Numbered from the whole stretch's first letter, positions 42,348 to 44,942 are shown. The stretch: 63,665 bases of DNA, filler included, from Olpidium bornovanus S191 (GCA_017911155.1; 31 parts of 31 records of this genome joined end to end with filler, not necessarily neighbours in it), one strand, 5' to 3'. The notes: generated by a model from the sequence alone, not told the origin. Numbers and translations are program-made.

Positions 42348-44942
42348 CCACGAATCCTTATTTTGACTTTCCCGCTTGAATATCAAAGGGTTGAGAATCA
42401 ATTCCTTTCGCTGGAGCCGGTACTGGCGCAGGAGAGAGAGCACCTGCAGAATCTTGTGGATCGCCTGGGTGCGCTTCGGCCGACGTTGGTATTGGTCGAG
42501 CGGACTGTTTCACGGTTGGCGCTCGAGTTCTTGTTGAAAGCGAGAATTCCGGTGGCATTTAACATGAAACCGAGCGCCATATCGCTGATCGCTCGGTGCA
42601 CACGAGCGGACGTGTTGCAGAGCATCGACAAGCTGTCGTTATACCCGCGGCTCGGGACCTGCGGATCTTTCACCGTGCGAACGTTCGTGCATGAGTACAT
42701 TCCCGGCCGGAGGAAGACGTATTTGTTCTTCGACGACTGTCCTAAAGAGCTTGGCTGCTCGCTGGTACTGCGCGGCGCCGAGAATGGGACGCTAAAGAAA
42801 ATTAAGCAGATTGTCGGCCTACTCGTGTTCGTTGTGTATAATCTAAAGCTGGAAACGTTCCTTCTCAAAGATCAATTCGCGAGCGCGCCAATCGACCACG
42901 CGGTGCCTGTGCCTCTCCACAATGACGCCTCATCCAACCCCACTTGCGTCGGCGCCGCCCCGGCAGGAGATGCTTCCGTTGCGCAGAACGGTAAAGTCGA
43001 GGCTGGAGTCGTGCAGACATTTGAGTTGGTGGCGGAACCGGCTGTGGCGGATAGTGAAGTCGTTCAGGGAGGAATAATGGCGCCGAATTCAAGTGGCATA
43101 GTCGGCGTTGTTCCTGAAGCCCGCCCAAGTATCCGCGAGTGGATCGATCAAGTCGAAAATTACTTCGTGAACAACGAAGTGTCTGATCACATTCAGCTTT
43201 CAACGGCCATTAGCCAGCTTGCCGGCGCCCCTGCCCTCTGGTGGAACAAGCACGTTGAGAACACGCCGGAGAAAGAACGGGTTCAGGCGTGGGCAGAGTT
43301 GCGGGAAAAGCTGCTACAAAGTTTGTGCGAGCGGTCGTCGCGGGCCGTGGGCGAGAAGGCAACGGACCAGCCTACGGTAACGAACGAGGAAGCGCGCCCC
43401 GAGACTGTGGCCGGCAGCGGTCAAAATGGCAAAGAGCCTGTCATTAATGTGGAGGATTCGGAGAAAGCCAAGAACGGACCGGTGCCCCCCATGCTTACGC
43501 TGCTGTCTGCCAGCCAGGCGAGAGCCGAGATGCGGGCGTACATACGCGAAGGCAATAACTTGGAATCCCGGGTGGAGACGGCTCTTAGGCCATATGAAAT
43601 TACCATTCTTTCCGCTTCGCCGTACGTCGAGTTTCCGGCCCCGTACGTGCTGACGCGAATGCGCAAAATCCTCAACGAAGAGGAAGAGCGCGACGCGAAG
43701 GGTGCGGCCGCGCTTTGTGCGACAACCGGGCAGGCGGTCGCGCAGAGATCTTGCGACTTTTACGAGCGCCTAACGCAACTCAAGGCCGGCGAAGCTTACC
43801 TGCAGGAGAACTCCGACAACATCACTCCCTACGCCCATCAAAGCCTCGTCGTTCTCTACTTTATGATATCCACAGTGGTGAACGTTCCATGCAACCCGCC
43901 GGAATTAATGGTAATCGAGTATTACCGCGGAAATGACATTACCCTCGGGCAGTATCTCGAAAAAATGTGCTTTGAGTGCCTTAGGCCCTGTCCCGTCAAA
44001 TCATGCGAAGCTCTCCTTCGTGACCATTACCAGAGCTACGTCCACGACGGCGGCCGCGTGAACGTCAAAGTTCGGCAGCTGCCCACCCAAATTGCTGACA
44101 TGGAGGACACCATCCTGATGTGGAGCTACTGTAAAGCGTGCTCCAGCGTCACGGGTGTGGTGCCTATGTCTGAAGAATCGTGGAAGTACTCGTTCGGCAA
44201 ATACCTTGAGCTGTCATTCTACGGCGGCCAGATTGGGTTCAGGCCAGAAATCTGTCCGCACAAACTATATCGGGACCATGTGCGCTGCTTCGGCTTTCAC
44301 GGACTTGTTGTCCAATTCGAATACGAGACGGTTGACATCTGCGTAGTGGCCGTGCCGCCGATGAAGGTGTTCATCAATCCGGAAGCCAACGTGAAGTGGA
44401 AGAAGAAGGACCGCGATACAATTCGAGGGCAAGTCGTCAAATACTTTGATTCCATGCTGGCGAGGGTAAAGTCGTTCAGCGTTGAGAAAGAAATCCAACC
44501 GGTAAAGCAGGAAGCATGCCGCGCGGAGCTGACGGAATTCACGCGCCGTGCGATGGCTGACAAATCCAGCCTGCTGCAACTGTTGGCACGTGTCGACATG
44601 AGCACGCCGGCTGATGACACTCTTGCGCTACACTCAGTGCGCCGTGTCCTGCAGAAGCTCACGGAGGAGTACGAGGCGGACTTCGCCGACTTCGTCCGGC
44701 GATTCATTCAGCCGGAGCGAGACCTCAAGCGACTGACCGCCGGCCAGTTGAGAAGGCTGTTCGCGGATCGAGACTACGACCAGACACCATACCTTGCCGT
44801 GCGGGCGACACATGCTGCATTCATGCAGGACGTGCCTTTGGTCAGCCACTTCGGGGACGAGTACACGTCGGAAGAGTCCATTCCCGAGCACTGTCTGCCC
44901 AAAACGGGAACCTCTCCGACGACTTCGTCGTTCGTCTCACCG
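42348..44942 (+). CDS. FAB1: PI3P 5-kinase Fab1/PIKfyve, internal part (TCP-1-like domain end, linker with Gag-like insert, Cys-rich CCR region)
   Basis: EPVLAQEREHL...KTYLFFDDCPKELGCSLVLRG...YNLKLET; HQSLVVLY...DITLGQYLE...YVHDGGRV...ILMWSYCKAC...MSEESWKYSFGKYLELSFY...CPHKLYRDHVRCF; 875-codon uninterrupted ORF. Confidence 0.96.

Follow-up and report, generated by a model that had tools for sequence, protein, structure and literature searches.

The Fab1/PIKfyve gene of Olpidium bornovanus S191, a zoosporic root parasite (PMC7865070), contains a stretch of retroelement origin in frame between its TCP-1-like (CCT) and Cys-rich (CCR) domains. Profile and alignment comparisons identify residues 247-332 of the open reading frame as a homologue of the capsid N-terminal lobe (N-lobe) of Ty3/gypsy Gag. 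As read from the sequence, this is a real and tidy capture of a retroelement domain, in a single fragmentary genome. The likelier account, in our judgment, is a lineage-specific, in-frame capture of a gag fragment in Olpidium Fab1, carried as a tolerated passenger rather than as a proven co-opted part.

Identification of the Fab1 Fragment

The window analyzed is a 63,665-nucleotide stretch of DNA, filler included, in which 31 parts of the S191 genome are joined end to end. Positions 42348-44942 form one open frame of 865 codons encoding Fab1/PIKfyve, and this piece was identified by exact sequence match as contig JAEFCI010002705.1 (2595 bp) of assembly GCA_017911155.1. The ORF is read in the frame of position 42348 and is truncated by the contig at both ends. 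It had been described in the original prediction as an uninterrupted ORF of 875 codons; the frame is indeed uninterrupted, but the count is 865 codons without the N and the artificial linker. The S191 assembly was built with MEGAHIT on short reads from non-axenic zoospores and subsequently binned, and RNA-seq exists for this strain (PMC7865070).

A protein search returned Fab1 homologues down to E 1e-152. The nearest Fab1/PIKfyve proteins are those of Glomeromycota, chytrids, and Mortierellomycota, with identities of 35-46%, and this kinship fits the position of Olpidium in the fungal tree. The order of domains in the piece, CCT followed by the Cys-rich domain, is that of the Fab1/PIKfyve PI3P 5-kinases. 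Pfam Cpn60_TCP1 (PF00118) matched residues 1-163 (E 4.5e-16). Alignment of the CCR with fungal Fab1s begins at residue ~411, and the invariant Cys and His columns are kept (C515, C548, C553, H560, H566, C595, C598, C636, H638, and H644). The FYVE and PIPK kinase domains must be located on other contigs of the fragmented assembly. The features of the piece are listed in Table 1.

Two antisense ORFs overlap Fab1, one of 156 codons at 42398-42868 (-) and one of 136 codons at 44297-44707 (-). They may simply be a product of the G + C-rich coding sequence.

Table 1. Features of the Fab1 piece of O. bornovanus S191, in window coordinates.
Feature	Position	Strand	Evidence
Fab1/PIKfyve CCT (TCP-1/Cpn60-like) domain, C-terminal part, residues 1-180, left-truncated	42348..42887	+	PF00118 and gap-free alignment to fungal Fab1s
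Linker A, residues 181-246, Ala/Val/Gly/Pro-rich	42888..43085	+	No counterpart in 11 Fab1s; aromatics 1.5%
Homologue of Ty3/gypsy Gag capsid N-terminal lobe (Arc N-lobe-like), residues 247-332, in frame with Fab1	43086..43343	+	phmmer, hhalign, gag profile, AlphaFold/Foldseek
Linker B, residues 333-410, acidic, hydrophilic	43344..43577	+	No Fab1 counterpart; GRAVY -0.80; aromatics 1.3%
Fab1 Cys-rich CCR and downstream sequence, residues 411-865, right-truncated	43578..44942	+	Alignment with fungal Fab1s

Homology of the Insert to Ty3/Gypsy Gag

When residues 245-340 were searched by phmmer against 1.84e9 representative proteins, Ty3/gypsy gags were recovered with E values from 9e-9 to 9e-4. 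The two top matches, P0057 and P0058, were rejected as gag relatives because they are repetitive, non-gag proteins whose scores are summed over short repeats matching the start of the query. Apart from these and the query itself, all remaining matches were Ty3/gypsy gags according to Pfam. The single-copy matches P0067 and P0069 gave E values of ~4e-4 to 9e-4. Several plant-like gags among the matches (P0059, P0061, P0062, P0066, and P0068) are predicted proteins with two tandem copies of the N-lobe, which doubled their phmmer scores.

The 240-residue linker between the two Fab1 domains was then compared by hhalign with a gag alignment that excludes the insert. Linker residues 67-152, which correspond to ORF residues 247-332 and window positions 43086-43343, were aligned with a probability of 97.3% and an E value of 2.4e-11. 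A profile of the insert-free gag alignment gave the segment 60.5 bits, compared with at most 9.0 bits for 2000 shuffled sequences and -1.1 for the reversed sequence. A chance resemblance to gag is ruled out by the hhalign E value and by this distance from the shuffles. The peptide on which the original prediction was based is present in the sequence, in the Fab1 frame and between the TCP-1-like and CCR domains, and its likeness to the Ty3/gypsy Gag capsid N-lobe is borne out by phmmer, hhalign, and the profile score. The location given for it (43110-43330) also holds, except that the homologous span is slightly wider on both sides.

In Pfam, the Retrotrans_gag model scored 14.5-18.5 bits (E 0.0024-0.04), below its gathering cut-off of 24.1, and its match covered only model positions 3-39 of 97. 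Arc_capsid_dom gave E 0.13 against the segment. This shortfall fits a fragment that ends at the end of the N-lobe. PDB sequences searched with the insert by phmmer yielded no match.

The nearest gags are P0069 and P0070 of Calcarisporiella thermophila, both of which lie within retroelement remnants. In helix 1, P0070 and the insert share 12 identical consecutive residues, REWIDQVENYFV, and P0069 agrees with the insert at 12 of 14 residues. Overall, the insert is 19-27% identical to individual gags, and identities between fungal and plant gags fall in this range too. P0069 is 236 aa long and includes a CCHC knuckle; after it comes a separate RVT_1 fragment of 224 aa. The locus of P0069 (L002:10001-12218, C. 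thermophila MU987583.1) lies between ordinary host genes and resembles a degraded Ty3/gypsy-type element. In the N-lobe alignment A4, seven columns reach a conservation of at least 90%, and the insert keeps every one of them (G6, W21, E26, A43, W54, W55, and W71), which amounts to the Gly, the Trp..Glu of helix 1, the Ala, the Trp-Trp, and the Trp of helix 4.

The Retroelement Piece Is Limited to the N-Lobe

The gag profile matched the piece in frame +1 only, at residues 248-331 and model positions 13-92 of 181; outside the insert, this frame encodes Fab1. Over the six frames of the 2.6-kb piece, there was no second gag-profile match that could represent a C-lobe, and the CCHC motif (C-X2-C-X4-H-X4-C) was absent. 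LTRs, LTR-like, junction, or flanking repeats, target-site duplications, and tRNA-like, Rfam, or tandem-repeat features were likewise not found in the piece. The six-frame profile and motif scans, the repeat scan, and the open frame thus agree with the original prediction, in which the C-lobe, the knuckle, LTRs, and stop codons were reported as absent.

A profile that includes the insert reached dArc1, dArc2, and mammalian Arc in the PDB, and it covered the whole of the 73-residue dArc2 N-lobe chain 6SIB as well as Arc N-lobe chains. The full-length coverage of 6SIB, together with the absence of a second gag match, indicates that the segment is a complete N-lobe and nothing more. It is not a complete, capsid-forming retroelement Gag.

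Predicted Fold of the Insert

Helices were predicted at residues ~262-276, 280-290, 294-304, and 315-333. An AlphaFold model guided by an alignment of gag sequences consists of four main helices with a core pLDDT of 78-89. In a Foldseek search of the PDB with this model, the top eight matches were all Arc/dArc N-lobes or capsid domains (probability at most 0.99, target-normalised TM 0.68-0.75, rmsd ~2 A), with weak E values of 0.06-5 for this small domain. The Ty3 capsid NTD dimer 6R22 was ranked 10.

The single-sequence AlphaFold model (pLDDT 66) had no capsid match by Foldseek against the PDB, and the structural support therefore rests on an alignment made of gags. No match was found in the BFVD viral fold library. 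Of the comparisons with capsid that the original prediction proposed as a check, the profile part gave a match by hhalign, while the structural part gave one as a gag-guided prediction, with the alignment-guided model and not with the single-sequence model.

Open Frame, Splicing, and Assembly

The 230-codon linker is open over its whole length, for which composition-matched shuffles gave P ~3e-4. For the gag part alone, the probability of being open by chance was ~0.02. The five other frames of the 258-nt fragment all contain stops. Codon usage and GC3 of the insert, compared with those of the host gene, gave no clear signal either way, and the composition of the insert agrees with that of the host gene.

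These figures bear on the alternative that mature Fab1 lacks the insert or the entire additional linker, as an intron or in another way, and that this sequence owes its open frame only to its youth and coding origin. Such a reading draws on the modest P value of the gag part, which itself derives from an ORF, on a linker far longer than in relatives, and on codon usage in linker A and the insert that does not score as clearly host-like. It does not sit well with 230 open codons out of 230, nor with the splice sites. The GTAAAG near 42990, proposed earlier as a donor by which the segment might be spliced out, lies at 42991 and is without an in-frame YAG acceptor. No canonical strong donor (GTRDGY) is present in the linker outside the insert, and those in-frame GT..YAG pairs by which the insert could be excised all use the poor donor GTTGGT and lack a branch motif. 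A scan of splice sites accordingly gave no convincing in-frame intron around the insert. In addition, alignment to fungal Fab1s showed that the conserved Fab1 parts are intron-free across the whole 2.6-kb stretch. We regard an intronic insert as quite unlikely, and the open frame and splice-site scan suggest with good probability that the insert is translated.

An assembly artefact, in which a de Bruijn-graph mis-join placed repeat-derived sequence into the Fab1 contig, is highly improbable. The contig was seen once, in short reads assembled by MEGAHIT from a metagenome-like sample, and such an origin could favor a mis-join. However, two mis-joins would be required, with a return to the same gene in unchanged orientation and frame. 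Approximately 200 nt of unique open linker flank the insert on either side, the junctions are without repeats, and the agreement in composition between insert and host gene also argues against a foreign join.

The CCT-CCR Linker

The spacing from D175 to Y416 is 240 residues in Olpidium, compared with 32-96 residues in 11 other fungal Fab1s. The CCT and CCR of these proteins align with those of Olpidium throughout, invariant Cys and His included, but they have no insert. Even without the 86-residue gag lobe, the Olpidium spacer would be ~150 residues, still longer than in the 11 aligned proteins. The insert is absent from all of the other Fab1s retrieved (55/55) and from all other matches in the 1.84e9-protein library.

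Linkers A and B had no detectable homologue in the Fab1 alignment (n = 11), in Pfam or a word-indexed linker search for A, or with the gag profile for B. They may have arrived partly with the insertion, or the native linker may be unusually long. The aromatic fraction of the insert is 7%, near that of the folded Fab1 domains, whereas it is 1.3-1.5% in the flanking linkers. This composition is what a small folded module held on flexible tethers would show.

Both neighboring domains have assigned roles. The CCT domain is required for binding of the Vac14 scaffold, the CCR touches and restrains the kinase domain, and the Fab1 complex contains one molecule of Fab1 (PMC5385934). The spacer between CCT and CCR is ~140 residues in yeast and ~280 residues in human (PMC5385934). 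As these lengths are very unequal, an additional compact domain at this position is likely to be tolerated.

Passenger or Co-opted Domain

A possible route to the present gene begins with the capture of a piece of retroelement DNA or cDNA by a broken exon, or with a larger insertion that was later reduced by deletion or trimming. Either course would explain the lack of LTRs and of a target-site duplication. In yeast, Ty elements are known to supply fragments that are captured at breaks. The fragment would have survived as one that was in frame and folds by itself, and it would be translated as a small four-helix module with disordered linker on both sides. It could persist as a passenger, since little harm would come from a compact domain that folds on its own within a flexible linker of variable length. 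If the module acts at all, its likeliest activity by analogy with Ty3 and Arc N-lobes would be protein-protein contact, either self-association or the binding of short peptides.

The passenger account is weakened by its dependence on one MEGAHIT contig, which is 2595 bp long and was built from short reads of a non-axenic sample. A second Olpidium Fab1 or linker fragment was not found by the Fab1 homologue search, in the 1.84e9 proteins, by a word-indexed search with the 250-residue linker, in JGI metagenomes searched with the protein, or with an exact 23-mer of the insert.

The other reading of a translated insert is that the N-lobe is a selected, working module. By analogy, it might change PI(3,5)P2 control through dimerisation or clustering of Fab1 complexes or through docking of a peptide ligand. 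In favor of this are an intact frame, a complete domain that retains every family-wide conserved residue, and a position between the Vac14-binding and the kinase-regulating domains; the gag-host fusions Crtg14-PEX14 and Crtg10-KELP provide precedents (PMC8321522). Among the co-option criteria of that study, an intact open reading frame was found here (865 codons) (PMC8321522). The insert scored ~61 bits against a profile of 12 gags and true divergent fungal gags scored 20-39 bits in leave-one-out, although the 12 gags had been picked as matches of the insert, which inflates its score. Taken at face value, the difference could point to constraint and away from a decaying passenger. The limits of the segment, running from domain end to domain end, are somewhat cleaner than expected of a random fragment, which is mildly suggestive of selection at least for foldability.

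Other points speak against co-option. The five other frames of the fragment contain stops, so only the sense frame could survive in an exon, and the in-frame state is therefore not evidence of selection for capsid function. As the fragment derives from coding sequence, its intact frame is no proof of selection, and a young insertion would look equally intact. The high profile score is biased by the choice of profile members, and an orthologous insert was found in no other Fab1 searched. Co-option is thus rather unlikely in our assessment, and a tolerated passenger remains the preferred reading. The original prediction of a domesticated capsid module is accordingly supported in part, for the capsid N-lobe and its place in Fab1 but not for domestication. 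The host enzyme had been called an essential lipid kinase, which overstates its status in fungi; yeast fab1 deletion mutants are sick but viable.

Comparison With Known Gag-Derived Proteins

Host capture of retroelement gag pieces is already known from Arc, dArc, SCAN, PNMA/RTL, and gag-PEX14. The present case is that of a single capsid lobe, cut almost exactly at the domain limits, which an early-diverging fungus has within a conserved lipid kinase. The insert resembles the capsid NTD of Ty3/gypsy (Metaviridae) Gag in its homology over the whole N-lobe, in the conserved G, W..E, A, WW, and W, and, according to the gag-guided model, in a predicted four-helical fold. Unlike that Gag, it is without C-lobe, knuckle, pol, and LTR and is embedded in a host enzyme.

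The animal proteins Arc, dArc1, and dArc2, which are co-opted Ty3/gypsy gags, gave the best structural matches of the model and the PDB matches of the N-lobe profile, and the insert has the same limits as the crystallised N-lobe constructs. These proteins differ in being two-lobed, free-standing, capsid-forming, and conserved across lineages, whereas the Fab1 insert is a lone N-lobe in one genome. The binding of PI3P by Arc (PMC11363301) was considered as a parallel and rejected, since the paper makes no mention of the N-lobe and assigns capsid assembly to the Arc N-terminal domain.

With the gag-host fusions SCAN, Crtg14-PEX14, and Crtg10-KELP (PMC8321522), the insert shares the joining of a piece of LTR-retrotransposon gag in frame with a cellular protein; the SCAN domain is listed among the co-opted gag genes in the same work. 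Fusions of the Crtg14-PEX14 and Crtg10-KELP type are conserved across families, under purifying selection, and expressed (PMC8321522). In comparison with them, the Fab1 insert is an N-lobe alone and is internal, between two enzyme domains. Three cases of gag co-option in fungi have been described, and they derive from Copia and Bel-Pao, not from Ty3/gypsy (PMC8321522).

If the insert is translated and conserved, it would mean that a lone capsid lobe is fit for reuse as a protein module, and it would extend the co-option of Ty3/gypsy gag to fungi. Should the less likely reading of a selected, working N-lobe apply to Olpidium Fab1, it would represent the first reported co-option of a Ty3/gypsy gag in a fungus and the first capsid-derived domain in a phosphoinositide kinase, where by analogy it might mediate self-association or peptide docking. 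As a passenger, the insert would still be a clean example of a foldable retroelement fragment tolerated in a flexible linker, which would be the first step of domain capture.

In the literature searched, no paper linked gag to Fab1/PIKfyve, in agreement with the original prediction, in which no described Gag-Fab1 fusion was known. An old domain survey does include Retrotrans_gag, without detail, among the domains that co-occur with FYVE or PX proteins (PMC2837644).
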